Assembly: GCA_965202585.1 (NCBI GenBank)
Contig: OZ241831.1
Coordinates: forward strand, 37,386,001 to 37,450,000
Length of the DNA: 64,000 nucleotides
Origin: Thalia democratica
Lineage: Eukaryota
Reading direction: 5' to 3'
Shown: positions 8,801 to 64,000 of the stretch, piece after piece
Position numbering within the stretch: the stretch's first letter is position 1
Layout of the letters: each line of letters opens with the position of its first letter
Notes under the pieces: model-generated
What the model saw: the letters and a program-made list of their open reading frames with translations, nothing else
What the model was told of the DNA's origin: nothing
Databases searched by the model: none
Position numbers and translations under genes: made by a program

Positions 8801-11800
8801 TAAGATTTTGCGTTTGTTTAAAACATTGGTGGTAATTTTCTGTTTCTTAAGAAAAAGCGCTTATACTTTATACTATTCAAATTATTAGTGTTTTACTTAA
8901 ATAATTATTTTTTATTTGAATCAACTTCGAACGTTGTAACACTTTGAACACGCATACGTTTGCTGTAATTAAACGATTCTACTTCATAAAACATAAAAAA
9001 ACTGGTATAAATATTTTCTTTTCGAATAGAAAATTGACCTCAAAAAAAAACCTAAAAGTAATAATACTATTCTAATCACGTTTTACAAATGTATGATAAT
9101 TGACTATTAACATATAACAATGGTTAGAAACTTTCTCTTATTAACGTCATTTAATAGAAAAAAAATTAAAGTGGAAAATTTTAAGCTAGTCATAAATTTA
9201 AACGGAGTTTTTTTTCACACGTAATACCTTTGATAGCTGATAAAATTTTGAAGCTTTACCTTGGTGAGTTCATTGATAGATCGGTTTTAGACAGCTTTAA
9301 TTTCAACACTCAAAGCTTACATGCAAAAGTTGTCAGTTAAAATTTATTAAAGAAAAAAGCTTTGAACGTTACAAATGTGAATAAATAACTTTTTCTACCA
9401 AATTTATAAATTTAAACTGCTTGGATTTATTGTATATTACCTAGGCTTGTTTTTATCGTAGACAAGTAACTCGAAATAATCATAATCTTTTAGTTACTAA
9501 GTGTAATTATTTTGACTACGGTATTGATATATCTAAAATAAATGTTTTAAATGCTATACAGCTTTAACAGTGCTACTACTAATTAATTGACGAAACCCGT
9601 TTGCTTTAAATTTTTATCAGCAAGTTGATTTAAAGTAAACAAAAGAGTTCCTTTTAAATACTTGAATCAATGAATGATGATAAAACTAGCCAGAAGTATA
9701 ATTGTAATGATAAATTAGCAGTTTATCTTTGAAATTAGACAGATCACAAAACACTTTAAAACCTAAACAAGTGTTTGTTTAGTTTTTGAATGCTAGTTCT
9801 TGGCTATGAGTTCACTTTATGGTTCAACTTAATCTAAAGAACTTGTTTTTTATTGGTATTTCAGTAGGTAAAATTTTTCTAGATATGTTTTATTAATACT
9901 TATAATGGTTTTGTGTCGATGTTTTTATTTTAGTTCTAGGGTATTTTATAAAGTATGTACTAAACATGTTTAATCTTGAAATTAAAAAAGAGTTTTTCTT
10001 TTTATTTTAGTTGATTAAAGTAAGCTTACAACAAAATAATTGCAAGATTTTCGTTAAATAATTGTCTATAAAAATCATTGCTATTTACTAACAAACATAA
10101 AACAATCTTGCGAAGAAAACTTCAATGAAGCAAAATGTTTAAAGGAAAGAGTTTGGTCTACATTGCTACCACAAGTATGTTGATTAATTACATTTGATTT
10201 GATCAATTAGTATTTTTTTCTTTTTTATACAAATAATTGTTTTTTTTTTGTTTTAAATATATACACATCAAAAATAAACTATTATTTTCTAAAAGTATCT
10301 GTATTTGTTTTTTGAAAATATCATTGTAATTTTTATTCAAAATTTAAACTCATCAAATGTAATTTATTCATTTAGTTAAAGACTCACAACTAGCCAAAAA
10401 AAGCTTTTTTGATAAAGTAATAGATAGTTTACTAAATGTTAATACTTCTAAAGGCATGTGGCTAATTACCATCGGAATTTAAACTATTGACTTCATTACA
10501 TAAAAAAAAGCACTTGTATTATTAGTAAAGCTTTCTATAACTAGGGTTTTTTTTCTGCAAGTTTGTCATTGGTAAGTGTTTTAAGAAATTATGACGTAAA
10601 TAAACTTTATTTATCGAGAAACTTTAACACTTTCAAATACTTAAAAGCTAACTAACAAGTTTAATTTCTTAATTAAACAATAAACTTGAAAAATAAATTT
10701 TATTTTTTCAATACCTTAAACAACAAAAATACAAACTAGCTGCCTATATTGTCAAATCGAACATTTTTTGAAACTGACAGGAATTAAAAAGAGTATTTAA
10801 AGGCTTTGACTTCAAATTACTGTAGTTTTTGATAATCTTTTATCTACATTGTCTCTTGTAAAGTATAACAACTCGGTTTTTTTACAGCTTAAGAACAATG
10901 TATGTTTTGACATATTCAAGGGATTAAAGTAGTAATTTATATAACAATCATCAGAGTTTAGTTTATAAATCGGCAATGTAGACTTATTTTGCTGTAGCTA
11001 AGATAGAGAATGTAACATTATTGTAATTACGATCGTCGTCTGCATATAAAAGTTACGCTTATCATTCTATTGAAACTTTAATATTTTCATTAAGTTCTAT
11101 TAGATTAAAAAAAAATTCACATATATTATTAATATATTTTTAAATCGCTAATATTTAAAGGACTTAAATGTTTTAAGTAAAAATAAACAAGTAAAAAACT
11201 TAAAAATACAAAATAAAAAAATACAAAACTAAAACACCAAAACATGAAAAATTTTTTTTCAAGTTTAAGAAGTGAACTTAGTGTTTTGTTAAAAGCTAAA
11301 CATAAATATATGAACAAAGAAAAATATATACAAACTCGTACACAATTTCCTTATACAATTCAAAGAAATAACCTTTCGCTAAATTAAAAGTATTGCTGAA
11401 ACTAAATGAATCAAAATATTAACCTAGGTTTTGAATGATAGAGTTTTTTTTTTCAAAACTGTAATCAAAAATCATAGTTAAGTTATCATAGTTAACAAAA
11501 TATCTTCTGTTAATCTTTTGACTCATATAGATTTGTATTTTCATCTCAAAACTACAAGATGAATTTCAACTGATACAATACAGAGTAAATATTCTAGTAG
11601 CGAGTAATTTTGTTATAAATCAATAAGCGTGTTAAATTGATAAGATTTACATTTTGTTTAAGTTCACAATTACTTTTACGATTACTAAAATAATAATTAT
11701 TGCGATATTTTCTAACCCTAGTACGATTGGCTAAGCTTAGGTTTATGTTGATTCTTAGGTAACTGCCTTATATTAAAAATTTAATCTACCTGAACTTAAA

Positions 11801-14800
11801 CATAACATTTGATTTTGAAAAACGTACTTAACTATCTGTTAAAAAACTATCAAAACTAACATACATTAGGTTTTTCTGGAAAAAAACATTGTTTTAATTA
11901 TTTGTGGTCGGTTATCACTCTTTTGACTAATGGCAAGTTGATATTTTAAGTATAAAACGTTTTAATTTACCTAAATCAATTAGATATAATTTGTAAGAAT
12001 AACTTTCCTTAAGTAGTAATTTTTGTTCTGGAAAAAAACTTTGTTCTAATATAGTTTTTTAATATATTAAAGTTCTTTTCAATTTTTTTTGTGAAAATCA
12101 ATTGTTAACTAAATTTTAGAATTTTTTCAAATTTATATGAAGCAAATATTATAAATAAACAAAACAAAAACTTTTTGAAATAAAAATAACCAGTTGTTAC
12201 ATTTTTTAAGTGCGTATCACCTTGTATTCGTAAACACTAAAAACTTAGTTGTACTTGAATTAGTTGTAGTTTATACTTTAAATTGTAAAATTTCAACTAA
12301 AACTATATCAAGTTATTTTTTACTGATGATTATTAAAAGTTCAAAAGTTTAGAGAAATTAATTACAGTTTTGCCAAGAGTAATTGAACTCCGCCTTTTAA
12401 TAAATAGATTGTTTAACTTAGCAGCCTTTAAACTCAATTAACAAAGATAAAACACTAATTTGTCTAACTAGTTGGGTTTCTTGGCATCAAAATCATTTAA
12501 CCAAAGTACAAAAAACCAGTGATTCTATAACCTTTTTGTAGTTTTTAATTATTAAAGGGCAGGATTTTTGGCGCAGATTAGCGATTAGATTACATCTCTG
12601 TACATTTGTTTTTCTTTGCTGGTATTTTTCGTTTAAATAAATCAAATTTAAATTATTTTTATTGATGACGAAACAATTGAACGGTTTATTTGTATGCTGA
12701 GAAAATTTATTATATTTTTGCTGCTGATAAGAGTATATTGAGTAAAATTTTATCAATAGAATTTTTATCGACATCAGCAGAAAATATGTAAACTATTAAT
12801 TTCGATTTTTAATCAACAAGTAGTATTAAAGTAAATTAAACTTAAAAAATAAATTGTCATAATAAATAGAGTAAGAAAAAACTATTTATGTAAGTAAGAG
12901 AATACGACAAAAGTGAACGATTGAACAACTATCTTTTAATTGAACTAAGTATTATAAAAACAATTGTCAACACTAAAAATAGAAAAACCTAGGAAAAAAA
13001 ATAAAAATGAGTTTTTAGTAGAAACTCATAGTTTTATTTTCTTTTTAAATTTCACTACTATATTTGTCTAATTTTTTCTTTTAATTTTTTTTAGTATAGT
13101 AGTAAGTAAGATAAGCTGATGGTTAAAAAATTTGGAATTGATGTAAAACATGAAGATTAGTTTTTTATAAATCATTTTATTGAAAATCTTCTTTTTATTT
13201 AAGTTTTCCATTTCACGCCTTGGATATAGTTTTTGAACTTCTGTCAATTTTCGGGGGTTGTGGTCCATTTAATTTAAATCTAAATAAGCAATATAATATA
13301 TTATTTTAGATTTAAAAGGCTTACCATTATATCGTTTTTAATACGAATAGTTTAACGTGGATTTTAGACTATCTTCCTTAGAATTATAAAGATAATTATA
13401 AAAAATATTTTAGCTTTTTAGTAAAGATTACAATATGGACTTTTTAGATCTCAGTTGAAATTTGTACTTGGTTTTTTACTAAACTAATGATTTAAAATTC
13501 AATGTTTTAAGCTAAAATTTAATACATTAACAAACTTTGTTTTAAATATAGTTTTGATGAGATGTATTAAATTCTATATTTAAATGGCTGTAGAAATTTT
13601 ATAATAAAATTTATTATATAAAAAAAAATTAGAAATTATAAAAATATTAATTATTCTTTTTGATATTGAATTTCAGATGATAATTAATTAACAATTTGTT
13701 AAAAGGAATTACGTAGTAGTAATATAATCATATTTTTGATAAGTTTGTCTTAAACTTTTGCAAAATTTCCAAACTTAAGTTATTTTAGTTTAAACATAAG
13801 TACAAACTATCTGACTGTTTTTATCAAAATACTCAATCAATTTTCAATAAAGTCATGATACTTTTATTTTTAATATTAATATTTAAATACATCCGTCATA
13901 TACTGTGGTTCTGTAAGATTTAAAACCAAGTTAAACTTAAAATCATATCGGTTGTATATATGTGTAGTTATATATTACTTTTGAACTTAAAGAATTATAA
14001 CAATATTTGATTAAAAAACTAATCAAAACCAAACGAAACTTAAAACGAACAAAAAACTAGCCTTAACTAACGAAACCTTTACTAAAACAAAAATTGCCAC
14101 ATTTTTTATTTTCGTATATTTTGATTTCCGTGGGCCACGAGTCGTGGCCTATGTGTAAGCTTAATAACGATTATTTTAAGTATTTTAAACGTTTTGCCAT
14201 TCAACTTGAATCTTATGTATATTGTAAACGTCTTATCAACTATTTTAATTTATTTTGTTACACATGCGCTTATTCTTAATCTTTTATTTGCATTCAGGTG
14301 TAAATTAAATTTAACCAAAACTTAGTGTTAAAAAATTTTTATAGTGAAATAATAAAACCGTTTTTTACTGGTACTTTTATGCCAGTTATATTTCTATATT
14401 TAAGTTTAGTTCGTTTTAGATTATTGTCTTCATAAAAATATATACCTAGTTTTTTTATATAAATAAAAAACAATTTAGTTAGCTGTTGGAAATAAGAATT
14501 ATAAGTAAAAAAATATCAGTAATATATTTCAATAATAAAGTAACTGAGAAAATAAAACTTGCAAAGTAATCACTTTTTTTTTTTTTGAAAAACTAATTAA
14601 AAACATTTTAAGTATATACACCTTATCTTACAATTTTCTCATACTTTTTACATTACTTTTATTCGTACGAATTATTTAAACACAGTTTTTTAACTTCAGA
14701 AACTAACAAAGATGAAACTGTAGCAAAATATAAGTATAAATGCAGTTTTTGATACTTTTTTTGTATTAAAGTTCAAATTTAGTTGACTAAATGGTTGAAT

Positions 14801-15151
14801 AATATTTTAAACTAAAGTAAAAGTTGTTTTCACTTTAGTTTTTGTTTTATTTTTTATAACTTTTTTATTACTAAGTTCTTTATCAAACATTTAATGTAGT
14901 CTCAAGTAATTAGTTTTTTTTTTTCTTAAACACTTTTATTTTTTACCAAAGCATTTAAACAACTCTGTAACCGTTATGGACTTCCGTACACCAGGTCGTA
15001 GGATTAATTATACTGAGAACCTTTTTTTTTCTTTCAATAAAGAACAATAATAACTGAAATCACAGGTAATTATTGTCAAAATACAAATTGGTATGATAAG
15101 AATCAAGTTGCAATTTAACAAATAATAAAGTTTATAAACAATGCTTTAAAT

Positions 15152-15347
15152 CAGTGCTACTGAAATGAGGTTCCGCGGAACACTAGGGTTCCGCGACGCC
15201 TCTCAGGGGTTCCGCGAAGCCTTTCGAAATTTAAAAAAGAACATTTATTTAATTAAACATTTTATGTAAAAATAAAATTAGGGGTTCCGCGGAAAAGTTT
15301 AAATTTGGAAAAGGGTTCTACCACTAGAAAAAGGTTCAGAAGCACTG
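15152..15347. mobile_element. hAT-superfamily MITE (196 bp)
   Basis: TIRs cagtgctactgaa / ttcagaagcactg (1 mismatch), perfect 8-bp TSD ctttaaat (15144-15151 and 15348-15355), four GGTTCCGCG subterminal repeats. Confidence 0.9.
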
Positions 15348-18300
15348 CTTTAAATCACTTGTTCAAAAATCACTATGCTTAATCTTTTTTGATAATTTAT
15401 ATTGAATTGTATTAATCCCTAAAGTATCTAAAATAATACAAAGTGTTTCTAAAAAAAACATTATGCTTAGAAAATGTTTTTTTTTTCACTAACGTAAAAC
15501 TTTTAATAGTTAGTACAAAATGACTTAGATACAAAGATTTAAATAAATATTAATTTAACTGCTTTGTTTAGAATAAAATGACAAATAATTACATTAAGTT
15601 TAAAAAAGTTAAAAGAAATTACACAGGAATAATGTTTTGTTGGCAAAAAAAAAGTGATACTGTGACAGGAATATTTTTCTTATTATTTTAGTAAAATAAT
15701 AGTAGTTTTCTTATTATAAACACCAAAGTGTAAAAAAACATTAGCACAAGATTTTCTACATATATTTGAACGTGTTTAAGGCTGCGTACTTTTTGTTTAA
15801 AGTTTTAGTTTAAGGTTAAAAGTATGAACTCAAAAGCATACCATTATTTTTATCTAAACACTATTTAAAAGTTAACTTCATATTTCAATGAAGCTACTTC
15901 TAGCTAACAGTTTGTGTTGAAAAATGTACAAAACTTGTATCAAGTTTGCAATAGTCCACGTTTCGTAAATTGAACGTATAACATTGTTGACCACATCAAT
16001 TACAAAATTTTATTGTTGATAAAGTTTATATGTAGAAAATGTATTCATCATTGAAAGATAATTAAAGTAGTTACATGTTTTGCAAACAATTTTTGACTAA
16101 AAACTTTTATTTATAAAAAGTCCATTAAAGTTTTTGTTTTAGTCGTATCTAATGCATCGCTAAAACTTTAGTAAATAAAGACTTTATAATACATTGTTTT
16201 CTTAAGATACTTTTCACTTTTTAACCAAAAGTTTATCAGTGTTCAAAAAGCTTAAAACTTATTCTGAATGCTTGGCTTTTAAACTTAAAAGTAAAGTTCA
16301 TATTTGTTTTATTACAACCTATTTTGTGTCATATGTTTCTCACAATTATTAAATAAACATTAACATAATACAATATTTCTTCTTGTTTGTTGTTTTTAGA
16401 CATCAGAAGTGACGTATGTATTTTTCGCAAAGAAAATTTGTTTTCACAATGAAAAATCTACACTCACTAGATTCTACCACACAGATAATATAATTATACA
16501 AACAAATTATTACACTAAATAAAAAATCTGTCTTGTGTTTTTTCTAAATATTTGTTTCTTTGAAGCCTGGTAAATTTATTATAGAAGGATTTTGAGTATA
16601 AAACAGTTTTATTCATAATCTAAATAAATAATTTTGCATACAAAGAGTAGAATCTTTGTTGAGTTTTTTTTTCTTTGTAGAATAAAAATAACAAAACATT
16701 TTTATAAGTATTATTAAAAAGTGTTTAATATACAGTCTCCTTGTTTTAACTAGTGACTATTTTAAAATTATAAACCTAGCTAATGCTAGATTTGTTTTAG
16801 TAGCTTTTTTATTATGATTATTGACAACTGATAGTAAATTTATTATATTTGGTATATTTTATTTTTGTGAGGTTTTATTTACCTATAATTTATTGTTATT
16901 TATGTTATTTTTTTAGTTAACTTTATATATCTAATAGGTGTGTTTTAAACATTAATCTAAAAGACTATAATTCTTTAAGAAAAAAAAATCAATAGAAGTA
17001 TATAATCAATCATATTTATTTAGTATTGGCGCCGAAAATATTAGCATAGGAAAACACACTACAAATAATTTGTTTATTTTTTTTACCATTTTTAAATCTT
17101 TATTAACGTTCTAAATACCTTTGGTAGTAAAATTTTGAAACTCTGCGTTATATTGAAATTTTTTTAAACCTTTTTTATTTGACTATTTTTTTATAGCATA
17201 TAATTTAAATTGTGAAATACAAGCTATATTAGAAAGAAAATAAGTATAACGTAAAATTTTATAATTTATCAATTTTTAACAACATTATACTACGATTTTT
17301 TTTTTTAAATGTAAAGTTTATAACCTATTAATTTTTTGTATTTACGAATAAAACAATAATTCTTTTATTTACTTACCATATTACTTCACTTACCAAATTT
17401 AAATTTGTTTAATTTAGTTCTTTTCTGAAACTGTTTTATTTTATTGTTTTGTTATTACACATAAAACAATATTTCTTATACTAACTTACCATTACTATAA
17501 GTATGTTTTTTTTTGTATTAGCTTATCTTTACTACTTATAAAATTTGAAAAAAATGTATCAAATTGTAACTGTCCTGCTGAAAACTTTTAAGAAGTAGAG
17601 GTTAATATATAAAAGGTAAACTCAGTTATCTTTATAAGTTGTTTTTCTAGTACATTTAATATTTTAACATAAACAAACATAAAAACTGTTTATTAAAATT
17701 TTAACGTAGTTCTTGTAAAAATTAAAATGTACTTTATGAAATTATCATGCTTTACTTTAGTAAACCTTTAGTTAATTTCAAAAATAAGTCCGACTAAAAA
17801 GAGTTACAACTGAAACTTTTTTTAATTATAATAAATGATTTTTACTCTTTTCTCGAGGTACTTTAAAGTTTAGGTAATATTTAAATTACTCCCATTTAAA
17901 AATTGAATAAGTAAGGTCTTAATATCTGTTTATGAAAATATTATCTAAAATTTTTGAGATTTCCGAATTGCTGTTTTCTTTATTTGAAAGCAAACAAATA
18001 AAAGTAAAGAATTTTCTAATTGTTATTCTAATTTAGATTAAAGTAGATTAGTGTTTAAGATAATCTACACAAACCAAACAAAAACTATTCTAAGAAAACA
18101 CAAGATTTTTGATAATTGCATGCTACTTGCATACATATGAATATAAGAGTCAAGGTCCATTTGATATACTTTTAAGTACTTATAAAAATGAATTAGTTCA
18201 AGTTAAACAAATATTTATATTTTCTACTAAAGTCGTTTACAGTCACTATATTGACATAATTTAGCTTAAAGAATTAAAATCCCTTAAATTTTCATTCATG

Positions 18301-20048
18301 CAGTTAAATCTTGTACGTATAAAAACTATTTATAATCAATAACCTATAAGTTTTAAGAACTTAAATTTAGTATAAGTATATAAACAGAAAGTAATACAAA
18401 CTTTATAACAAAGTTTTTCTTTTTAATTTGCTATTTGCGTGAGAAGAATTTTAACGTGCAAACTTTTATTTAACGTCACAAAATACTGAAATCACTTGCG
18501 GTAAACTTATTTTTGTACTATTTTTCGTAATTATAAAGAGCATTTACCCTTTAAATTAAAAAGAGAAGCTCTATTATTTTTTATCGTTTTAAAAGCAGAT
18601 TAAAAAAATCATTAAATTTCTTTTAAAATAGTTTGTAATTGCGATAAAGTATTAAAATAGTTTGTTATAAAAATAACGCAGGAAAACTAAATAATTAAAA
18701 GTTAATTTAAAGCAAAACAGTTTTTAGTACTCGTATAGTTTACTTTGTTAAACTATATATTTATACTGTTTACGTTTTTTTTTTAAACTTGCAATCTTTT
18801 TCTTTGAACAAAATGATTTAAGTTATAGAACTTAAGTTAAACTGAGTTCAATTTTTTAATTAAGCTCGTAATCCTAAGAAACCAATAACCCTTTATATTA
18901 AAAAACTAAAACATTTAAAGAAAACAGCTTTAATAAAAAAGTTGGTAATGCTTGAACATCTTACAGTTTTGAATATACAATACCTTTTTTCATTTTATTT
19001 TTGTACTTTAACAATTTTTTTATATTGTGAAAAGTAAGTTAAATTTTTTATAGTTTGCTCGCATTTAAACGTTGTTCTAAGAGTTTATTCGAAACTAGTA
19101 ACAAAAGTAAAAAACACAACCAGGTTAATATAGATCTTGTAAAAAAAAGATTTTTTTTTTAATTTAAAGCTTTTTAAGTTATAAATTTAATTAGAACTAA
19201 ATGTTGACAAAACAAATGTTTTGATATAATAAATATAAATGTACCAAAACAAAATTGTTTATTAAAACTTTATATAAAAGCGACAAGAAACAATCTACGT
19301 TAAAAATCAAACAAAACCTTAAATCAATTTTATTTAACAGCAGTTCATAAAACATGTTAAATTTAAAAAAGAATAAAATTTCATTGACGCAGCTATATTA
19401 TGAGATTATACAATGATTTTTAAAATTAAGTTGCATTTTCAATAATAATTTGTCAAAAATGTTTAATTTGCAGCATTAAAATATAAAATGTCTTCACAAA
19501 TATTCAGCAGCTGATAACTTTCTACTAACATTTCTATACTAAAGATGCTATTATTTTGTAAATCTTTTAAAAAACTACTTACAATAAACTGTATAAAATT
19601 TTAAGTATAAACTGTACATAAAAAACCATCAGCGATAAAAGCGAGAAAAAGATTGTAAAACGTAACCTTGCTTTCAAACACACAAAATACAATTTAAACA
19701 ATTGTAGGAAAGCTTAAGTACATTTTTTTATATTTTGCATAGTTAAATAGACTCATAAAAAGTTGTAATACCTCTATAGTAAAATGTTATACTTAATTCT
19801 AAACCTCAAGATTAAGAAATATAAGTTTATACTTAAAGCTTTACTAAAACACACAATAAAAAAACTTGAACTAAACATAACAAACCTTGAAATATATATA
19901 ATACATTGCACTATATAAATTTAACAATTTTAAACCTTTTAGAGTTTATTAAACATTATTTTTTCAGCTTGTAATTTGATACTTAAATTTAAACTTTTCG
20001 CGAAATGATGTCTTACATTTTACTATCTTTTATTTTTCGAATGGTATT

Positions 20049-28260: not shown

Positions 28261-28294
28261 TTAAAACCTCGCAGAACTATAATATTTAACTAAA

Positions 28295-50000: not shown

Positions 50001-53000
50001 ATAAGTGAACATATGTTTTTAAATAAATACAGGCAGTAAAAAAAAGTTTTCTAATATTTTATTAACTAACCAAAGTTAATCAATTGTCTAAAAGCTTATT
50101 GAAAAATAGGGAATACTTGTGATATTTGACAACTTAAAACTTTGTATCTTAATTCTCATAAAAAAAGACTATTTCATGACATATGTTTCTCACAGCTACT
50201 AAATAAACATTACAATAAGACGTTATTTCTTCTTGTTTGTTATTTTTAGTCGTCAAAAGTGCCATATGTATTTTTCATAAAGAAATTCATTTTGTCAATG
50301 AAAAATCAATCCTCACTAGATTATACCACACACACTATATTATTATATATTCATAAATTATCACACTAAATAAATAATCTATCTTATGTTGTTTGTCTGT
50401 GTGTGTTTTTTTTTTCGAAATCTGATATAATTAGGATGTTAAATTAGAAAAAAAATTGTTTAGAATCGTTTAATTTTCATTTATTAATACTAAACCTAGT
50501 AAGACTCAACGTAACACTCTTGTTTTGATAGTTTTGTTTTATCATTTTTAATTTAAAAAAAACTTCATTTAAGAATGTTTTGCGAACCATTTAGTGTTAA
50601 CTTAGGTTAGTGTTTCCTTTTGTACATTATTTGACAGTCCTTTTAAGTTTAACTAATTTACCTGTTATAATTCTAATATGTTATTAAAACAAAAATATGT
50701 TATTAAAGAGCTATTAGTTAAAACTAAGAGGACTGTAAAATAACTCTTTGAAATAGTGTAATACACATAAATTTTGTACCGTCGAGAATTTTATAATACT
50801 TAAGTTAGAAAAAAGGTATGTGCATAAATACCTTGAAAAATGCTTACTTATCTGTCAACACTGAAGAAAAAATGTTTATTTATCTTTTATAATATTAGCA
50901 TTTTAACAAGTGTACTAAAATTTAAAATAAAAGTATATTTTGGTTTTACCAACTTAATTTTCAAGTTTTCTAATTTTTTGTTCATATTTATGACGTAGTA
51001 ACTAACAATCTATTGTGATAACAGACTGGTTTAAATTAGATCCTATTTTCCATCAGTATATTTAAAAAATTCACTAGTATGCAAAACTGTTTTTTATTTT
51101 TAAAAACTTTAATAGATCGATTTACTAAACATTACCATAATTTTCTATTTTAACATACTTTAGTGAATATTTTATGAAAGTTTAACAAACTTTAAAGTTG
51201 TGTTTTCACTAAACTTCTATAATGATTTTAGAACTTTAAATAAAAAGATTATTTTTTAAATTTAGTTAATATTTCAACAGTTTACAAAATAAAGTCAAGA
51301 CAGATATAAACAAAACTAAATATACTTACTAAAAAAGTTATAGCAATTCTATTTTTCAATAGTTGTTTTCAAAATGTGTACCTAAAAGCTGTCATCATAC
51401 AATAATACATAAACACATATTAAATCGTTTTAACTATTAATAAACTAAAACTTTAAACTTAAAATCTAAAAGATATTTTTATAAATAGTAGTTTTTATTT
51501 TTGCTTTTAAACAAAATCAGTTTATTAATTTTTGATTATCAAATCATTTAATTAAGTAAAAGCCACAAAAAAGTTTGTTTTTAATTTTAATAAATTAGTT
51601 ATTAGTAGTTAAGTTTTAAATAGTTTTTTTTTAAGATAGACGGCTTACAATAAAAATGAAATAAAACCTATATAACATAAAACTTTATCATATGTCTTTT
51701 TATAATTATATTTTTTTACATTTAGCTTATCAGTTAATGTTATTTATCTTTAGGTGTATTTCAAGACCATTGCTTAAAGACAATGAATAAATAAGTTTAT
51801 TTTTCAATAGAAACTGCATATATCAATCATATTTACTCAAGATTGGCGCCGTAAATATCTGCATAAGAAAAGACGCTGTAAATAACCTGCTTAATTATTT
51901 TAAAAATCTATATATAACCTTTTAAGTAAAATAACTAAGCACTATGTGACATTGAATTTTTATAAATCGATTAAAAAGACAACTTTTTATATTGTAGTGT
52001 TTAAACTACGAGTAAAAACTTATTACAGTATAAAAAATATGAACTAAATTAGTATTGAACAAATCAAATTAAGAAAGTGTTCAGAAATTTTAATTTTTTA
52101 CAATTTTATAACTAATAAATTTTATTTTAAAACTTTTATTAACTGGTTTTTTTATATTTCAAACAAATAAAACTTTTTTTATAGAACATTTGTCATATTT
52201 AGGTTTGAAAAATATTCATTTTATTATTTACTTATTTAACCACTACTACTTATTTAGTGTAAAGCAAAATTTAATAAGCCGGTATGTAAAAAAACTCTAA
52301 AGGAAGAAACGTGCTTTATTTTTAAATGAAAAAGTAAACAAAAATAATTTTAATTTAAAGCTTTATAAAGTGTTGTTATAATTTACTTAACAAACGAAAA
52401 ACCTTTACAATTTTGACATACCTTATCCTAAATGTTTATTTAAGTTTAGGAAAGTTTTGTTGGTGTAAATAATGTAAATTAAATTAAGACTTTAATTAAA
52501 TTGTCTAGCTTGTACTACGAATTTAACTTTGTACAATGTATGTATTATATTTGTACATAGTGATTCAAATTTCTATGTACATTGAATTGCAACAACTTTT
52601 ATGTAAATTAAAATAAATGCTTTAGAAATAGGTTTTACAAGGTTATCAAGCTTTACTAAACTAAACTTCTAAAGAAAATAAAATTGGCTAGGTTTTATGA
52701 AAAAAGTATTAAAAATAGTTTTAAATAACATAAATTGTGTATCTTATATGTTTTGATTTTACAAAACAAATAAAGATATCTTAATTACTAAAAGAAAAAA
52801 AATATATTTATTTTATTAAGCGTTCATTATGTAAACTAAGTTTGCACGATAAACTCTTTAGAAAATAAATATAAGTTATTTATAGGATAAATGTAGTAAA
52901 TGATAATTTACTTTATAAGCTGTTATTTTTAAAAGGTATTTAATAGAATTAAAGAAAAGCGAAAACTAAGATTTGTTTTATTCAATTACTAGTTTTGTAA

Positions 53001-53986
53001 GATTTTAAAACTGATACTTTTTATTTTGATGCAAACAACTAAACTTTATGATTATATTTATTATCATTTTAGTTTGGTTAAAATAGATTAGAGTTTAAGA
53101 TAGTCTATAAAAGGCCATCAGTATTTGTTATTTTAAATAAACACAAAATCTTTTGATAATTGCATGCTTCTTGCAAACGTTTAAATATAAGAGTCAAGGT
53201 CCATTTGATATACTTTTAAGTATTTTATGCAAATGAATATGAATTAATTCAAGTTCAAACAAAATGTATAAATTTATACCTATACAAAAAAAATTTCTAA
53301 CGCAGAAATAGTCATTTAGTATATAATCAGTGAAACTTTTATTTTGACTGCAAAAAATTATAATATACTGTTTATCAAAGTGTAAATGGTTAGTATTGCT
53401 TTTTATCTAAAGATAAAAAAAGTTTACTACTACTTTGATGTTGCTTAATTTAAAGTTAAAATATTGTTTACTCTTCTTTTAAAACTAAAAAGATTTAAGA
53501 AATTAACTGTAGTAGAAGTATATTTATACAAAAAAATACAAACTAAATTCTTATTTTTTAATTTGCCTGAGTAGCTTTCAACTTATAAATTTACCTTCGA
53601 CGTCATAAAATAATGAAATCATCTGCAGTAAATTTATTTTAATTAAATATTTATTTTTTAGGAGTTTTTATCTTTTATTTTCAAATAAAAGTTTTTCTTA
53701 ATCGTCTTAAAAGCAGATTATACAAATCATTACAATAAATTTCTATAAAATTTTTAATTGTAATAAAGCATTACAAAGTAAAACGGAAAAGTTTTAAGTT
53801 ATTTTGAAGCAGAACAGATAGTAATACTCATAAAGGTTACTGTTTTATATAAATTTTCTGTACATTATGTTATGTATTTTTTGTGTTTTCTAACTTAGTT
53901 TTCTTTTATCCTTCAACAAATAATTTATGTCTTCAAAATTAAATTGAACTTAGTATATTATTTTACAGCCAAGGCTAACCAATGTA

Positions 53987-54817
53987 CAGTAGAATACCGC
54001 TTAGGTACGCAAATTGAACCCGAACAAAAAGTGCGTACTTAGCACGGGTAGTGCGTACTTTTTGACGACATAGTATAATTTGAAATTTAGTTGTTTTTTT
54101 TTTCTTTCTTACAACTAGTCACTAAATAATTAAACCAAATAAACAAGTCTTTTTATTTTAAATAATATTTAAAACATAATTCTAATCTGCAAAATTTTTT
54201 AATAGATTTTAAAATAATTTTTTTTTTTTATAAAAAGTTTCTACATAACAAATACATACATTTAATATAGAAAGACAATGTCAGTCAATGATATAAAAAA
54301 GAACATTAAGCCATATTTTCCATATTTTGTTTTAATAGAGGGAAAGTACCAAACTACATTGTATTTAACAAAATTTTCAAAACATAAATGTGTGTACATT
54401 TAAATTAAATTATGATTTAACTACATATGTTGTACATATTTGTAGGTTTTTTAACTTTGTCATCTAGATTTATTTAATAGCATTAAAGCTAAAATATCAT
54501 TATTCTTTTCACTTTTCTGTAACCACTACATAAGTATTTAGTTTGTTAACACTTAATAACAGGATTGTCACTATCACAGGCCACTTAGACTACTCAGGAT
54601 TACTCACCCTATTTTAAAAGTTGTGAAAGTCTCAGGCTAACTCAGCAGGTTGGCCATTCTACCTGGAAACATAAAATAGTCTGGAAAAACTTGATGATTG
54701 AAAACTTAAGCAAAAAAATCATAAAAAATTTAGAATTTTTTTTTGTCTTTCTGGATAAGTGCGTACTTAAAGTGGGGTGCGTATCAAAAAAGTGCGTACT
54801 TAAGCGGTAGTCTACTG
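53987..54817. mobile_element. Tc1/mariner-type non-autonomous element (831 bp)
   Basis: TIRs cagtagaataccgcttaggtacgca / tgcgtacttaagcggtagtctactg (2 mismatches), TA TSD, subterminal GTGCGTACTT repeats. The empty site aatgTActaag is present in unit A at ~32631. Confidence 0.92.
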
Positions 54818-55737
54818 TACTAAGAATTTACCTGAAACTAGTAAGAGAAGTATAAAACAAAGTTAGTCTAATATTTTACTTACTATACATTTGCTACAAC
54901 TTTTTAAAACTGTAAATGTTATAGGTTGTAAGATTTAATTAGAATTCACTACAGGCTAAATAAATATTATGGTATACAATATGCGAAGGTAACAACAAAA
55001 AACATGTTTATTAAAACTGTATACAATAGCGACAAAAAACAATTATCAATAAAAGTGCAATAGAAACTTAAACCGATCATTAAACAGCAGTTTACAAAAT
55101 ATTTAAATCTTTAACAAATAACTAAAACAAGAGTATATTTTTGTTAATGCAGCTAAATATCAAAATCAAGCAAGTTTTTTTGGACTAAACTAGTAACTAC
55201 ACATTTACCAAAAATAATTAACTTGCAGCATCAATGATAAAAAATGTAGTAAAAAAATGCAGCAGATAACTCATTGCTTATTTTTCAAACTAAAGATGCA
55301 GCTTTTTATCAAAAAATTTAAAAGTCTTTAAATGCTTAACTACAACATCTTTAAAATATACAATGGCGACAAAGGAAGAAAAAAGATATTTAGAATGTAG
55401 TATAAATTCTTGCTACCAACATAACAAAATAAAATGTGAACATAATTACAACAAGCTTAAAAAACTTACTTTTTATAGTTTGCATAGATACATACATACA
55501 TAAAGTTTTATTATCTTAAGTGTTAATATTTTTTAAGCTTAAGAATAAAAACACTTCAAGGTTTCTTGGTAAAAAATTGAACATTTTATACTTTGACCGT
55601 CTAAGTAAGATGTTATGTCATAAAAAATAATTAAAGTAAAACTTTTTTAGTATTTATTAATCATTATCTTTTAAGCTTTTAGTTTGATACTTTTGCTTTA
55701 CCCTATCTCGCCTTGTTTACTTTTGTCTCAATGTGTT

Positions 55738-55826
55738 TTATGATTGCTGCTCAACTAGATTTTGTTGAACTAAAATCTGTGATGGACTCTTTCCATTGTT
55801 GCTGTTAGATTCCAAAACAGTCAATC
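55738..55826 (-). CDS. Pax1/9: Pax1/9 copy B terminal exon
   Basis: tattAG acceptor, phase 1, LTVLESNSNNGKSPSQILVQQNLVEQQS*. Confidence 0.8.
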
Positions 55827-56012
55827 CTAATAGTAAATACATAAAAAACTTTTTGTAACTTTCTAAGATTTTAAACATACTTTGTTCATTAATGAATTAA
55901 AACCAAATTTTATAAAATCCAACTTTTTTGTATAAAACTGACTTAATGTTGTAGTAACAAAAACTTTCTATTTCTAATGTCAAGATACATTAAACAACTT
56001 TTTCAAACTAAC

Positions 56013-56316
56013 TCTGTTGGCTGTTCTGACTTTCAGAAAAGTCGTAAGCAGACTCAATCGAATTGAACGATTGTACGGATGAGTGGGGACTCCTAGTGGC
56101 AGAAGCTTCTGGCAATCCCGGTTGAATTACGGGATACATATCAGTACTGTAATAAGCAGAACCGTACTGCTGCATCTGTGGGTGCTGGATGTAGCTGCTA
56201 GGTGGCGCAAGGGGTGGTTGGTGGTGAAAATTGTGAGCATCGTAAACTGATTGGTTGTAGCAGGAATTTGATGGCTGCACTGAAGTAAAAGCTGATGATG
56301 CTTGAGTTGGCGACCC
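56013..56316 (-). CDS. Pax1/9: Pax1/9 copy B penultimate exon
   Basis: 304 nt, phase 0-1, GSPTQASSAF...ESQNSQQ, AG and GTTAGT sites. Part of ORF 56008-56370. Confidence 0.85.
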
Positions 56317-56477
56317 CTGTAAAAATAAATTAAGTTGTCTTAAAAATTTTGCTTTGAGTATAAAACACACTGTTAAGAGAAAAAGAACTTTAATTGCTAT
56401 AAGTAATTACATTTGCTGTCTTCCATAAATATTGAATTGACAAGAAAAGTATCTTTTAGTTAAGTAAATTTACACAC

Positions 56478-56662
56478 TTTTTCGCTCGATGATTTTATAG
56501 CTGTCAACTGTTTGTTCACTGAAGATTTCGCGTTAGAATTACAAGATGTAAGATCTGGTGCAAGTCCGTAATAAGCTGTTTTCCATTCTTCCTCGATTTT
56601 CGGAGCAAAATATAACGCGTTGTTCGGCTGGTGATTGTACCCGTTAAATGGTGTTGTGTATC
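56478..56662 (-). CDS. Pax1/9: Pax1/9 copy B internal exon (open)
   Basis: 185 nt, phase 1-0, ends ...KSSSEK|GTGTGT and joins the next exon in frame. Confidence 0.85.
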
Positions 56663-57007
56663 CTTAAAAACAGTTACAATTATTTTTATACAGCTAATTT
56701 TTAAATTTGTACTGATTATCGTAATTTAATTTTTCACGAAAATCAGAAGTTAGTAAACAAGAACAAGACTAAACTTAAGTTGTAAAAGTATTTCTGTACA
56801 AACTGCAGTTACGCTTAATGTTGAATTTTCAAACTAGTTTTAAAGTATTAGTTTCTTACAATTTTTAAGCACAGATATATTTTTACTTTTTCTTAACTTG
56901 CTTGTGCAAAATAAAAATTAGAAGGTGTAGTATATTTCAATTTTCAACCTCATATTCTGTAAGAACTTACTAATTGAGGTTATATTTCATTATAAATTGG
57001 AACTAAC

Positions 57008-57685
57008 TAATTTGCGAGTTGAGTATTTCGGGTATCGAGTGAGTGTAGAACTGAGACTGACTCGAACTTTTCATCGTGGAAGAATGTGAAACGTTTTCGA
57101 ATTTCTGCACAGAACTCTTCATCGACACCTGAGGAAAAATAAATCCTGAAGTGTCGTTTGCGCTGTACATCGAACTCGAGCTTTGATTGGTTGATGGCTT
57201 AACATCAGTCTGATCGCATTTCTTCACTGCTTGCGGCGGGCTCTTTTTTGCTTTGTAATTAGGGTTGAGGGGGTTTTCGGGATGCAGCACATTGCCCACT
57301 TTGTTCCTCAAAATCCTGCTTATGGAGGAGACGGAGGGAACATTGAACTTGTCGCAAACCGTGTCGCTGAGCAACCGGTCCCTGATCTCCCACGCGAATA
57401 TGCCCGGGTCGCCCACCTTGTACTCTTTTATCTTTTCCACCACTTTCGGCGTGGTCACCCTCGGCTTGCTGCCCCCTATGGCGCCCGGCGCGATGCTTCC
57501 GGTCTCGTTGAATCTGGCCAGGATCTTGCTGACGCAACCATGCGACACCCTCAGGTTTCGGCTGATGTCGCACGGCCGCACCCCCGTCTTGTGTAGCTCG
57601 ATTATTTTCACTCGCATCTGGGTTGGCAGGGGTCGGCCGTTGACGAAAACTCCCCCCAATTGATTCACTTCTCCGTAGGAGCTAC
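57008..57685 (-). CDS. Pax1/9: Pax1/9 (Pox-meso class) copy B: paired-domain and octapeptide exon
   Basis: Protein identical to the copy A exon (7 nucleotide differences, all synonymous). ttttctAG acceptor, GTTAGT donor. Confidence 0.95.
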
Positions 57686-60061
57686 CTAGAAAATTAATAA
57701 TAAACTATGTGTTGAAGTTATAAAGAAAAATTAAAAAGCAGGTTATTGATATGACATAAGTTCACATTTGATAGGACTTTAGCTTTAAACTTCTTTTGTA
57801 TTGTATAAACTTGTATTATTTTATATATTTATATACTTAAAATAGAAATAATTTTACTGAGTCGATTGCCAAAAGTCCCATTAAAAGTTTTAATGATCTT
57901 TCGCAAATGTAAAGTTCAAAAATAAAAGTACATATGCTTTATACAAATTTAACCTATAACTTTCAATTGTTTAGATTTTTAATTGATTAACATTTGTACA
58001 CAATTACACTAAAAAAACATTATGAGCTAATCATGATTTTTTTTTGTCCAGAACGCTGTTAGTGCAAAAAAATTGTTTAATCGACAGTGAGGATTTTAAT
58101 TATAGTCGCCACCACACGCAACAAGCACTTGTGTTGAAATTTTAATCCAATCAAATATTTGAGGGAAGATTTTCGTCTACACACAGGTAAGTAGTTTGTC
58201 GAGTGATTTATAAGTATGACGTATAACTGATGAAAATTTTACACGCTAAACAAACACTCGTGCTAGCAAGGGTCGTAAGTTGATAGCTTTTTTGTGTTTT
58301 TACCGATGCCTTTTAATTTATGATGTAAACAAAGCTACTTGTTTTTAATGGAAAATTTTTACCGAAGTTGGCAGATAGCCGAAAAGGAAGTTATTTGTTT
58401 TAAACGTTAATAAAGACCACCCTTAACAATGGCAGCGGTAATTAATCCGATTTGTACTTGTTTGCTTTAAGCTTTTGTTTCTTACCTACATTGTTTTCTG
58501 CTTCATTTTTTCTTATACGTTGTTTTTGTAAAGAACTTATATAGTTTGCATATGTTTAAATTTTAACTAAGTTCTTTTATGGTACTGTACACTTAACAAC
58601 TTCTAAAAACTAGAAAAGCTAGCTTGCATGATAAGTGGAAAAGTGTAAATAAATTTATTGATTATACTACAAAATAAGATAAACTAAAGCTCGTGTTATG
58701 AATGTTTGATTTATATTGGCCAAAACAAAAATATGCAGCGTATCGCATTTAATGCAAGATAATTTTTATTTGCAGTCAAAAATGGCGATAACTGCTCACT
58801 TTGCGAGAATTTTTAATTCAAAAGTTTCAATCAAAAACTTCATTTATTACAAACTTCAAATTTTATTTTGCACCTGCAAGTAGCTCAAATTACCAGCAAA
58901 ATTTCTTTTTATTAACTCGACACTTTTCACCTTTCAAAAGTCAGAACTCATTAGTATTGCAAAAGACGGCCATTGTTATGAAATCATCCGAAACGAATTT
59001 TTTCTTACGTCACGAATTCAACCCCCATTGAACGATTTGTCTCCCCATTTTGTGCTTCTCAAATTCGTGCACCCCAGATTGGAAATAATAGAAAACCTTT
59101 CAACACGTGAGTGTGAATAGAATTACCGAAACGACAAATAAAACAGATAAACTTTTATACAACGCAAGGTAATGTTTCTAAATAAACATTTTAAAAGACT
59201 TTGTTGAACTTCAGTTAAAAAAAAAATTATGCTTTTTACCCAAAATAAATCTTCTTTATATTACATTTTCTCAACGAGTGTTTTAATTATCAAATTAAAA
59301 CTATTTCTGCAACTCGAAACTTTAAAAAGCCTAGCTTTCAGGTTTAGAGTGTTCGTTTCTTAAACGATTTTATATTTATAAGTATTATAAAAATGGTTTA
59401 ACAAAAGTTCAATTATATATTTTAGTGAATAGAGACCAAAGTAAAAATATTTCTTAACTTAGATATAAACTTATTGAATATTTTATTTTCTCTCAGTATT
59501 TTAAGTAATTTCTTAAGTTAAAATTTAATTTGTTTGACTATTAGTTATCATTTTTCAACATTTTTAGTTTATTTGAGCACTGATCAGCTTATTAAGCGAA
59601 ACATTTTTCGTAGAATAAACTTTTAAGTCATTGTAATTTTTTTCTCTTTTTATAAAACACAAATCTCTAACGTTTTTTAACCACAAAACGTAAAATAATT
59701 AAAAAATGTGTGGTAACTACTTTGGTCATTAAAAAAAAGTATTATCATTTTAAAACCTGGATATGACATTAAACTGTATCCTGGTGTACACTCGATAACC
59801 GAAAAGTTTTTCATAGACCAGATCTTTGGACAAAATTTTTAGGGTTTTTCTTTCGTTCAAAAAACAATTAACCGAACAAAACTCTATTATATACAATGAC
59901 TATAAACAACCATACTGTTATTAATGACTGTACACTTTTGTTTTTTTTTATTTAAGACAAATCTAACAACCAGTAAGAATTTGAAGTAATTTGAAGTAAT
60001 TTGAAAATTTTGGTACCAGCTTTCAAATAGTTGTTATAAAGTATTTTACATAATTACTAAC

Positions 60062-60163
60062 TATAGTAGAACCTAAACAATTAGGCATGAGAGACATCAT
60101 GTTTTGATTAGCTATGAGAGAAGAGAATTCAATATGTTGCGGTTGTGTTGGGGAATGCAGCAT
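60062..60163 (-). CDS. Pax1/9: Candidate first coding exon of Pax1/9 copy B
   Basis: MLHSPTQPQHIEFSSLIANQNMMSLMPNCLGSTI|GTTAGT, with an extra in-frame ATG at 60169. Same phase problem as in copy A. Confidence 0.4.
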
Positions 60164-61166
60164 TTTCATACTTTTTTCTCCTGATAAATTTAGTCATTAG
60201 GTTCAGAAATTCGACTGAAGAATTTTCTATAGACAAAATAAATATCATACATTTTTGTTTATATGTTAGATTTTTAAAATGAGCTTTTAAAAATTTAGTA
60301 TAATTGAAAAGATTTCCTTTTAAAAACATTTTAAAGTATGCATTAAAATTAGGTTTTTGCAAAGATATGAGAAAACAAAACTATACTATTAAAAAAAAAG
60401 TTTTAAACATTAAAGTTTCTTAGTTAAATATAACAAATTAAATTAAAATATATAGAATAAACATTTAATATTAATTAAAGTCACAAGTCTAATCTTTTTT
60501 TTTTTTTGATGACTTACTTTATAAAGATTTTCGAAGACCCTTTAAGTTCTTGGCTGCTAAAGTTATAGTATTAATGAATTTCTTATTTTGGAATGTGTGA
60601 AATTGCCTTTTTTTACTTTGTTATGTCTCTCAATTCCTTTTTTTCATGTTCGCTCAATTAGTAAAAAATAAATAAAAAGATTCGTAAAGCTTTAAACAAA
60701 TTTAACTTAACAAAAATTTCAAATAAATCTATAAAGTTTTAATGCAACCGTAAAACACAAAATAAACAGCACATTAGGCAAGGTAAAGAGTTATATTAAG
60801 TGTTATGAAGTTTTTTGCCAGTGAATACAAAAACTATTCTAAACTACTTTTAATTAAACCCGGATAAATACAAAGCTAGGTGTTACTAAAAAATTTTAAA
60901 AAGTTAAAAGACATTTATATTAAGTAACTTTGTTATCGTTTATTAAATATGTTGCTCAAGGTACTAAAAAAAACTACTAACAAACACTACAGTGTTTAAC
61001 AAATCAAAACAAAGTTTTAATCTAATCAAAAACTAGTTAATTATGAAAAAACATAATAATATTAAAACTAGTTTGTAACTGTTTTATTCTTTTTAAACAC
61101 TTTTTAAATACATTTAACTGTTATTCTCAACTTTCTTATTTAGTCTGATTTTTGTTTTATTTTAAC

Positions 61167-61548
61167 TAGTGATGTACCGGACCCACAATTTTGGAACCCG
61201 GATCTGGACTTTTTTTTTCAAATTATAATCCTGCCGGAACCGGATCCGGACTTTTTTTTTTAATTAGAATCCGACCGGAACCGGATCCGGACTTTTTTTC
61301 AAATTAGAATCCGGCCGGAACCGGACCCGGACTTTTTTTTCAAATTAGAGTCCGGCCGGAACCGGATCCGGACTTTTTTTTCAAATTAGAATCCGGCCAG
61401 AACCGGACCCGAACTTTTTTTTCAAATTAGAGTCCTTCCGGAACCGGATTCGGACTTTTTTTTCAAATTAGAATCCGGCCGGATCCGGATATCAGACAAA
61501 AATGGCAATATCCGGCCGGACCCGGATAGTGAGTCCGGTACATCACTA
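61167..61548. mobile_element. hAT-superfamily MITE (382 bp) with an internal ~40-bp tandem array
   Basis: 20-bp TIRs tagtgatgtaccggacccac / gtgagtccggtacatcacta (1 mismatch), perfect 8-bp TSD attttaac, seven ccggatccggac(t)n-caaattagaatccggccggaa units. The empty site is in unit A at ~39030. Confidence 0.92.
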
Positions 61549-64000
61549 ATTTTAACACAACCATTCTTTTGAAAAGTAAACTCATTAAAGCTTGCTATCT
61601 GTTTAAAGAAACTAAAGCAAAGTTTTCTACAAATTCTACGTAGGCAATTATGTAAATATTTCCATTTTCTCAAAACTTGAACTACCTTTCAGTATTAGAA
61701 ACAAAAATTAATTTATATCTCAATGCACATAAAAGATTATCAAAAGGCGCCAAAAACTGCCAACACATATAACAATTATTGATTACTATTTTACCAAAAT
61801 CAGGTTATTCAACTTAAACGACAAAATACTTAAAAGCTCAAATGTAGTTTTCATCAAGCTTTGAATAATCAATCAATCAAAATTTACTGATGTATAAATC
61901 GTGGCATTTTGCTTTATTTTAAAAGAATTCTAAAATATTAGATTAGTTTTTCTATTCACACACCTAATCATTATTTATCATTTGTTAGGTTTTATAAAAT
62001 AAGTTTAATTTAGATAAATCGAACTTTCTAACCTAAATTAAAAACAATTAAACAAACTTTTATATGTCTTATGTGTGTTTTTGGTTTTATATTAAAAAAA
62101 TTTTACAAAACTTTACTTCTGAAAATACAAAACGTTTTACCATAACATAAGTATATTCATAGTAATTTCGGAAAATCGACAAATTTAAAAACTTATTTAA
62201 TTTTTATGTGTTTTTTTCTAAAATATTTTTTATTAATTTTAAATTAACAAAGTTTAATATTCAACAAAGTTTTAAGTTAACATCTCTATACTATTATTTA
62301 CAAAAGATTTTAAGAAAGATTAGTAAAAATCCACTTTAATTTTGTCACTTTTTTGCTGTTCGAAATTAAAGCCTAATTTTTAGTAATTTTAAGTAGTTTT
62401 TTTTTTCATTTCTTTTACATTTAAATAAAGTTGACCATATAAGTAACTGATAATCAAAAAATTTATCATAAAAGCTGAGTGAATATCCTTTATATATTTT
62501 ACGAGTTCAAAAGGTGGTCACGTTTAAATAGGTTATAATGATAAACCAAACAGAACAAAATTATTTGTACAAGAAATTAAAAGCGACAAAAAGTTTGTTA
62601 AATTACTGGTATTTAGTAATCAGTTGGAGATAAACTAATACTTTTGCAAAAAAGATCAAACTAGTTAGATGAAACGATTTCTAATCTTTATAAATGAATC
62701 AAAAGTCTCCTAACTGTAAACTACCTTCAGGTTTAAATGAAAAAAAGTGAAACTTATGTCAACATACTTGTAAATAGTGCTTCTTAACAGTTTTTATAAA
62801 TAAAGATCAAAAGTTACATCAGTAGAAAATTTTTCTATGTTTACTCTAAGTTTGCTAACATATTTTGTCTTAAGTTCTATAATTAGTGTAATTAATATAA
62901 TAAAAATATTTTTACGGTTTTCAATAATTTACTTTTGTATTTTGCTACTTAAATAATTTTGTTAATAAACTAATTTAATCAAATGTCTAATCGTTTTACC
63001 CTTTATACTTTATAAGAGTTTAGTGTACATTTTTTAAATCATATCAAACGGTTGGTTAAAAGTATGTATTCGTTTAAATATGGTTGATTACTCTTAAAAC
63101 AAATAACTCTACTATTAAGAAAAATAAACAAACGTACAGCTTTTTGAAAATCACACGATGTATTTGATTATTAATTAATTTAAATAAATTCTTTCTCATA
63201 CTTAAAAAGATTAAAAGATACAATGTAAGAAACACCTTATTTAACATTATTATTTATACAAAGATACTTTTTTAGTTTACTTTTAAGTTTTATAATTCCA
63301 ACTTAAATTAATACAAACAAAAATTTAACTGCCATATATATCAAATGAGACTAAGTTATATAATAAATTCGTCAGTAAACAGTTTTCTCATTTTTTTAAA
63401 ATTAAATTTAGTTCAACTGTTTTTAGTTAAATTGTTGTCATGCTTACTAACTAAATTCATTATTTATTATTAGTCAATCTTAGTAACATTACAACAAAAA
63501 TATTGCAAAGTTAAACAACAAACAAAGATTCTAAACTATAGATGTTGGTTTGAATTTTAATTGTTACAAACAACAATCATTAAACTTTTTTGTATCGAAA
63601 ACTTTGTTTAAGTAAAACCTTCAAGTAAAATAATTGTGTCTACATTATCACCACAAGTATATTAATGAGTTATTTTTGTTTTAGTGCTATACAAATAACT
63701 ATATATTTTTATTTTATTTATACACGTTAATATTTGATTATCTCATTAATTAACGACTTAAAACTGTAAAATAAAGCTATTTAAATAAAGTTAATAGTTA
63801 GTTTACGTAATTTTAATACAGCTACACAAAATTTTAATAATAATTATTTGTGTTAAAAGAAAAACCATATTAAAGTGTTGAGGAAAGTTCTTGATTACAT
63901 GCTTGCCACAGTTAATTTATTTAATAAATTATAACGTAATAAAAATTATCTTTTATAGAAATGTTTAAGTTTGTCGAATATATGAAAGTCAGTTTATAAA

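Follow-up and report, generated by a model that had tools for sequence, protein, structure and literature searches.

The 64 kb window analysed here (Thalia democratica assembly GCA_965202585.1, contig OZ241831.1, positions 37,386,001 to 37,450,000) has a G+C content of ~22%, with zero N and no gap, and carries a head-to-tail tandem array of a Pax1/9-class gene. In deuterostomes this regulator sets up the pattern of the pharyngeal pouches and gill slits. Comparison of the window with itself by self-blastn gives a tandem period of ~21 kb and resolves three collinear repeat units, C at 12.3–23.8 kb, A at 25.9–46.3 kb and B from 47.0 kb to the window end, each of which holds a minus-strand Pax1/9-class gene or its remnant: the gene is open in B, interrupted by a stop codon in A and reduced to a relic in C. 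A preliminary description, made from the letters alone, had proposed three copies in three different states and had named a self dot-plot as a check. Self-blastn and a finer search indeed return collinear tandem units, and the three states are borne out by these units, by the paired-box open reading frames, by the stop in A and by the relic in C. The same description gave each copy ~20 kb of co-duplicated flank, which does not hold for unit C, about 11.5 kb long.

Self-blastn aligns A 28368–42954 with B 49646–63999 in six blocks of 78–94% identity, and an older set of matches aligns C 12317–23848 with A and B alike at 64–80% identity. A more sensitive blastn search extends the array leftwards, with 8905–10785 matching 41270–43073 (63% identity, E 5e-147) and 11492–12305 matching 44279–45191; left of ~8800 this search found no significant match to the array. 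At the opposite end, the far upstream end of B (63458–63999) corresponds to A 42414–42954, a unit start, so the array runs past the window and the three copies of the preliminary description, correct within the window, are a minimum. Beyond the right edge, one or more additional units are to be expected, possibly with a further copy of the gene. The three tail-to-head junctions (leftmost-to-C, C-to-A and A-to-B) are homologous to one another, and a 1.4 kb segment at A 41011–42414 that is absent from B is kept in the leftmost unit, so its absence from B is a deletion in B. About 80% of the units is non-coding. The only G+C-rich spots of the window, at 34–36 kb and 56–58 kb, are the coding exons of copies A and B; no other gene was recognised in the 64 kb, including positions 1–9000 and the stretches between the copies, and Rfam gave no match in the window.

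The identity of the gene follows from its second exon. Paired-box open reading frames lie on the minus strand at 34910–35566 (A) and 57003–57668 (B), and both match Pfam PF00292 (PAX) at E 4.1e-64, covering positions 2–125 of the 125 in the profile. Every named protein among the best 120 of 5840 protein matches is Pax-1 or Pax-1-like (243–248 bits), and PDB paired domains of other classes are weaker (Pax5 197, Pax8 191, Prd 180.5 and Pax6 180 bits). Pfam matches of exon 2 are limited to PAX and related helix-turn-helix models, and exons 1, 3, 4 and 5 of B give no Pfam family at E up to 1 and no homeodomain. Features of the class are a full paired domain, an octapeptide and the lack of a homeodomain (PMC5333810, PMC4488758), the octapeptide following the paired domain with the pattern H[ST]V[ST][DN][IL]LG (PMC5333810). 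Here an octapeptide-like HSIPEILN ends exon 2, after the linker, and agrees with the class pattern at four of eight positions (H, S, I and L); it is shared with the relatives P0003, P0004 and P0010. We therefore file the gene as Pax1/9-class, by match scores rather than an all-class tree and with the octapeptide feature partly present. No entry of the protein database is identical to the exons of the window; P0001, from a Tara Oceans contig, comes closest at 74% identity. P0001, P0004 and P0016, the closest relatives, each derive from a different metagenome and are uninformative on copy number within one relative. A metagenome scan for relatives of exon 2 returned only five loci, in plant-associated metagenomes and 82% identical over the paired domain only, which carry no information on the present species.

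The full-length relative P0003, from a JGI (Joint Genome Institute)-sourced contig with a whole uninterrupted open reading frame, led to a short first exon (MLHSPTQ...) present in both A and B. Splice sites were checked by placing public assembled contigs on the gene of A. Four public runs were used in this form, and such contigs drop rare variants and cannot tell alleles from paralogues: X1 is from organism A, X3 carries the label of organism B, X5 is apparently a transcriptome of organism A, as its contig is spliced, and X8 is a marine metatranscriptome. An X8 RNA contig skips 35593–37946, joining exon 1 to exon 2, and a spliced X5 contig of 1573 nt joins exons 2, 3, 4 and 5 at GT..AG sites. 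Both data sets contain the intron at 33648–33833 between exons 4 and 5 (B counterpart 55827–56012), which had not been predicted beforehand, so the stop of the reading frame after exon 4 is intronic (donor GTTAGT) and the four-exon gene of the preliminary description gives way to one of five exons, its four introns supported by RNA contigs. The donor GTTAGT of intron 4 repeats the hexamer that follows exon 2 at its end. Exon 5 contributes 29 residues starting RLTVLES, which match the C-terminus of P0003 (...PGLTVLE), and the whole paired box lies within one exon. In B the model gives an open reading frame of 448 codons with canonical splice sites, all introns being GT..AG (Table 1).

Table 1. 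Repeat units, exons, exon relics and the identity tract of the Pax1/9-class array, in window coordinates.
Feature	Position	Strand	Description
Leftmost unit start ('tail')	8800..12305		Homologous to A 41206-45191 and C 20647-21575; left edge of the array
Unit C	12317..23848		Head, body, 3' end of gene, deletion joint 20522/20526, then tail sequence directly
C exon 5 coding relic	20049..20133	-	4-bp deletion near end
C exon 4 relic	20367..20522	-	Last 156 nt; in-frame TAG 20514-20512 (CAG to TAG), 9-bp deletion, GTTAGT donor kept
Unit A	25944..46312		From self-blastn and finer searches
A exon 5 coding part	33559..33647	-	Read only if codon 318 were sense
A exon 4	33834..34137	-	X5 and X8 RNA joints define intron 33648-33833
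A exon 3	34364..34548	-	Last codon 34366-34364 is TAA (codon 318)
A exon 2	34915..35592	-	Paired domain, linker, octapeptide-like HSIPEILN; spliced RNA contigs
Zero-difference tract, 545 bp	34938..35482 (= B 57031-57575)		Inside exon 2; probable gene conversion
A exon 1	37947..38037	-	ATG at 38037; N-terminus aligns with P0003; X8 RNA joint
Unit B	46989..64000		Cut by window end; final 540 nt belong to the start of another unit
B exon 5 coding part	55738..55826	-	Stop TAA 55740-55738
B exon 4	56013..56316	-	Gene model
B exon 3	56478..56662	-	Ends AAA; X8 RNA loose end reads B-type exon end with AAA
B exon 2	57008..57685	-	Paired domain, linker, octapeptide-like motif
B exon 1	60073..60163	-	Extra in-frame ATG at 60169

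Copy A shares the exon structure of B, with all of its splice sites intact, and is set apart by codon 318, the last of exon 3, which reads TAA in A (34366–34364) and AAA in B (56480–56478) by a single A-to-T change. The product of A would end after 317 residues, keeping the paired domain and octapeptide and losing 131 C-terminal residues, among them the SSAF, SYNQ and LTVLE blocks conserved with P0003 and P0010. By the usual rule, a stop well before the last exon junction marks a transcript for nonsense-mediated decay; the TAA of A sits 304 nt upstream of that junction, and decay of its transcript would be expected on this rule. Behind the stop, A differs from B by five non-synonymous and two synonymous changes, too few to show lost constraint. 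As these exons are still nearly intact, the stop appears young, and it may be rare.

Neither skipping of exon 3, which at 185 nt would shift the frame, nor recoding of the TAA, ruled out because the open reading frame of B itself ends in TAA, provides a way around the stop. An in-frame cryptic donor (TCA/GTGAAT), put forward in the preliminary description, is present in each of A and B at a distance of 14 codons ahead of the stop, but the RNA contigs shown all use the normal donor.

In copy C, tblastn found no paired box. At the deletion joint, 19073–20522 matches A 32633–33998 and 20526–20771 matches A 44168–44413, so the equivalent of A 33999–44167 (~10 kb) is missing from C. The deletion took exons 1–3, half of exon 4 and the upstream region. 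Intron 4 is retained with donor and acceptor. Identity to B is 87% and 93% in the remains of exons 4 and 5, and 58% and 63% in intron 4 and the 3' flank, suggesting that C was protected, by selection or conversion, over most of its existence as a separate unit and died late.

Copies A and B differ unevenly along the gene. Exon 2 encodes 226 residues that are identical in the two, with seven synonymous and no non-synonymous differences, and the remaining exons together carry ~5 synonymous and 15 non-synonymous differences (ratio of non-synonymous to synonymous differences per site, pN/pS, 0.81); the introns differ by 7.5–10%. The amino-acid changes occur on both lineages, B being the copy that departs from A and P0003 at residues 12, 16 and 311. 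The paired domain, described at first as identical in A and B, is so in protein but not in DNA, where six synonymous differences lie near the 5' end of the paired box. All seven synonymous differences of exon 2 fall outside a 545-bp tract in which A and B do not differ at all, six of them within the 110 bp before it. By simple arithmetic, with change confined to the ~122 synonymous sites of the tract and proceeding at the intron rate, the 545 bp would stay free of differences with a probability of ~2e-5. A tract of this kind beside introns 7.5–10% diverged reads as recent gene conversion: identity runs far longer than the surrounding divergence allows, and its edges are sharp. Conversion is its probable cause. 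Shorter identical runs lie at 33932–34141 (210 bp, exon 4) and 34426–34551 (126 bp, exon 3).

Two further observations may bear on this exchange. In the middle of intron 1, 36856–36992 and 58945–59081 form a 137-bp run identical in A and B against a background ~10% different, which may represent either a conserved non-coding element or conversion over a short stretch. Third-codon G+C in the paired-box part of exon 2 (57200–57590 and 35110–35500) is 0.78 in a 22% G+C window, and 0.48–0.75 in relatives. The high value might stem, among other causes, from a conversion hotspot in which conversion is GC-biased.

The relations of the three units were compared on shared ungapped columns. At the unit heads all pairs are about equally distant (identity 0.788 for C–A, 0.773 for C–B and 0.771 for A–B). 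A and B are closer at the start of the body (0.843, with C–A 0.687 and C–B 0.709), in the middle of the body (0.908, with 0.796 for both pairs involving C) and in the 3' flank of the gene (0.924, with C–A 0.659 and C–B 0.658). Overall, A–B identity climbs from 0.79 to 0.96 toward the gene, with kilobase indels. The head of B is as far from that of A as is the head of C, which suggests that B is an old third unit and not an allele.

The public runs show which of these sequences are common. In X1, contigs exactly matching A over 246, 387 and 224 nt of intron 1 have a word depth of 33–34, B-like contigs a depth of 200–225 and shared exon 2 contigs 218–248. In X3, depths range from 52 to 445, and at 33620–33913 there are two types, one with 11 differences from A (depth 200) and one with 25 (depth 52). 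Among the 40 differences from A with the best support, 30 show the letter of B and ten a letter absent from both copies of the window. The prevailing sequence in these samples resembles B without being identical to the assembled B, and the exact A type is present but minor. A ratio of 1:6–7 results, which is expected neither for two alleles nor for two fixed paralogues in one diploid; it could stem from several B-like copies per haplotype, which agrees with an array continuing to the right, or from a mixed sample. At the 3' end of the gene (33300–33660, exon 5 and 3' untranslated region) the summed contig depth in X1 is 430–850, spread over several contig types and above the rest of the gene, and the genome may hold more copies of the 3' end than of the 5' end.

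Spliced contigs of X5 and X8 carry B-type letters at 33843, 33857, 34372, 34387 and 37964, and an X8 contig end across the joint of exons 3 and 4 reads AAA at codon 318. No A-type RNA contig was seen in either data set, though such contigs drop rare variants. The X8 exon 2 contig differs from both copies at 14 of 560 places where A and B agree, so X8 samples a population somewhat apart; as X8 and B agree at the diagnostic sites, the letters of A, TAA included, seem to be derived.

Several repeats were noted in and around the array. Intron 1 of A contains, at 37644–37824 (core ~37666–37733), an element at a word depth of ~3e5 in X1 and 4.6e5 in X3, against a few hundred alongside. Hundreds of contigs break at its edges, as for a very high-copy dispersed repeat, possibly a miniature inverted-repeat transposable element (MITE) or a short interspersed nuclear element (SINE). 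A minisatellite at 61193–61490 is found in B only (41-bp unit, 7.2 copies, 87% match, rich in CCGGATCC-type palindromes), and A shows a gap at the matching place. Left of the array, 4804–4932 is a small tandem repeat with 52-bp and 18-bp periods, in a slightly G+C-richer patch at 4.5–6.0 kb where no gene was recognised.

We think it probable that the window holds a true tandem array of long standing, with sequence exchange continuing between A and B, a young and possibly rare nonsense mutation in A, and C as the relic of a late deletion. The anatomy, lesions, splicing and identity tract described above would fit the following order of events, with conversion as the presumed cause of the tract and A as a presumed null allele. 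The ~21 kb units would derive from one ancestral unit with a five-exon, minus-strand Pax1/9-class gene, and all three would be old, as any two of their heads now share only 77–79% identity. The gene-bearing bodies of A and B would since have been homogenised to 80–96% through unequal crossing-over or gene conversion between the two units, the latest event leaving the zero-difference tract in exon 2. B, or a B-like copy, would be the working gene, given its open 448-codon frame, canonical splice sites and B-type spliced RNA, and A would have been disabled by the one A-to-T change that makes the last codon of exon 3 TAA and removes the 131 C-terminal residues. C would have been long under selection before a single deletion of ~10 kb removed exons 1–3, half of exon 4 and the upstream region, after which its remains decayed. 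The interpretation proposed at the outset is partly supported, and its birth-and-death evolution finds support in the sequence: an open copy, a nonsense copy, a deletion relic and a coherent array are all present in the sequence.

A number of observations weigh against such a history. The depth of exact A in X1 (33–34, against 200–225 for B-like contigs) departs from the 1:1 expected of a fixed A and B pair in one diploid, and at most diagnostic sites X3 and both RNA runs are without the A-type letter. The common B-like type has letters of neither copy at 34030, 34033 and 34514, so the assembled haplotype is not the common one in these runs. B is itself not pristine, its changes at residues 12, 16 and 311 being derived relative to A and P0003. 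All of this evidence comes from assembled contigs, with their loss of rare variants.

Foremost among the alternatives is an assembly artefact, in which A and B are two very divergent alleles placed in series and the true haplotype has one working gene and the relic C, the case that the preliminary description had named as its own refutation. It draws on the X1 depths, where exact A has about one sixth the depth of B-like sequence and the sum of the two (34 + 215) is close to the shared exon 2 contig (248), and on the absence of A-type letters from X3, X5 and X8 at most diagnostic sites. A ratio of 1:6 is, on the other hand, also unlike the 1:1 expected of two alleles in one animal, so that contig depths fit neither simple model. 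The window is without a gap or N, A–B identity shifts gradually from 0.79 to 0.96 with kilobase indels, the heads are equidistant (A–B 0.771, against C–A 0.788 and C–B 0.773) and the A-to-B junction is homologous to the C-to-A and leftmost-to-C junctions. An old, diverged third head and such a junction would not be created by joining alleles, and homogenised bodies of two old paralogues would explain the pattern. False duplications from uncollapsed haplotypes likewise place two similar blocks side by side, but here the blocks are parted by a diverged spacer with older homologues of its own, and identity at the block heads drops to the level of the oldest unit, which would not be produced by false duplication. 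On the equidistant heads and homologous junctions, the allele reading is disfavoured, and we rate the artefact as unlikely.

We give a low probability to a second alternative, that A and B are both normally functional, the TAA being a private or rare null variant or a base error and the array usually holding at least two working Pax1/9 genes. At 34372, six bases from the stop, the letter of A has a depth of ~35/181 in X1, and the letter of B stands alone in X3, X5 and X8; abundant X1 contigs with the letters of A at 33931 (198/413) and 38648 (203/320) suggest a second common type, A-like in places, and the exons behind the stop have few changes. Against this, the stop site itself (34366) is outside the difference rows shown, so that these depths are not a direct reading of TAA frequency, contigs cannot separate alleles from paralogues, and the A lineage has private changes behind the stop, Tyr412 and Cys417, that are absent from all four runs.

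A broader proposal is that the window is the left end of a larger, still-exchanging Pax1/9 cluster, maybe with several B-like copies per haplotype, in which copy number and truncated, paired-domain-only members vary between individuals and could tune, in this planktonic lineage, how much of a pharyngeal patterning factor is made. It would fit the depth classes in two runs, where exon 2 is ~7 times the rarest exact contigs, and the unit start at the right edge of the window. As a whole we consider it speculative and improbable.

That A is a working paralogue making a shortened protein, a dominant-negative competitor or repressor at the targets of B, is very improbable: the entire DNA-binding part would be kept in a 317-residue product ending with exon 3, A has every splice site intact and exon 2 is identical in protein with seven synonymous and no non-synonymous differences, but most of that identity comes from a tract without synonymous change either, pointing to conversion rather than selection on A, the two RNA data sets contain no A-type contig, the stop lies 304 nt before the last exon junction, where the usual rule would predict transcript decay, and the nearly intact exons behind it mark it as young. 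The dosage or dominant-negative effects raised in the preliminary description likewise find no support, as the RNA contigs are all B-type and X8 reads AAA at codon 318.

The favoured history, a tandem array with continuing exchange, can be set beside known systems. Birth-and-death evolution with interlocus gene conversion is familiar from globin, major histocompatibility complex and olfactory receptor clusters. The present array resembles these in having units of differing age, open, nonsense and deletion-relic members, and mosaic identity with an exon-centred zero-difference tract; it differs in that its units are ~80% non-coding and its gene is a dosage-sensitive developmental transcription factor rather than an environment-facing gene. 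Like unprocessed pseudogenes, A keeps its introns and flanks. The gene itself shares with the Pax1/9 class (vertebrate Pax1 and Pax9, amphioxus and ascidian Pax1/9, Drosophila Pox meso) the paired domain, a paired box contained in a single exon, an octapeptide-like motif after the linker and the lack of a homeodomain, and differs from it in HSIPEILN, where the class has H[ST]V[ST][DN][IL]LG. Cephalochordates are described as having a single gene per Pax class (PMC4488758), and a comparison of tunicate genomes handles Pax1/9 as one gene within the pharyngeal cluster, whose members include slc25a21 (PMC5882950). The several tandem copies found here contrast with the single gene described in both reports, and no pharyngeal-cluster neighbour such as slc25a21 was found within the 64 kb window. 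Our searches of the literature turned up no account of Pax1/9 in tandem copies, whether for thaliaceans or for other tunicates. The process is a known one, ordinary gene-family turnover by birth-and-death with conversion, in an unusual gene.

If A and B were joined haplotypes after all, the locus would be a useful test case for false duplications in this assembly. If the cluster is a true one, Pax1/9 models in this genome will need RNA support, the fifth exon being invisible from open reading frames. Such a cluster would also illustrate the uniformity that conversion maintains in a DNA-binding exon as the tails diverge, and its working, freshly stopped and decayed copies would form a natural series on how a dosage-sensitive regulator tolerates duplication.

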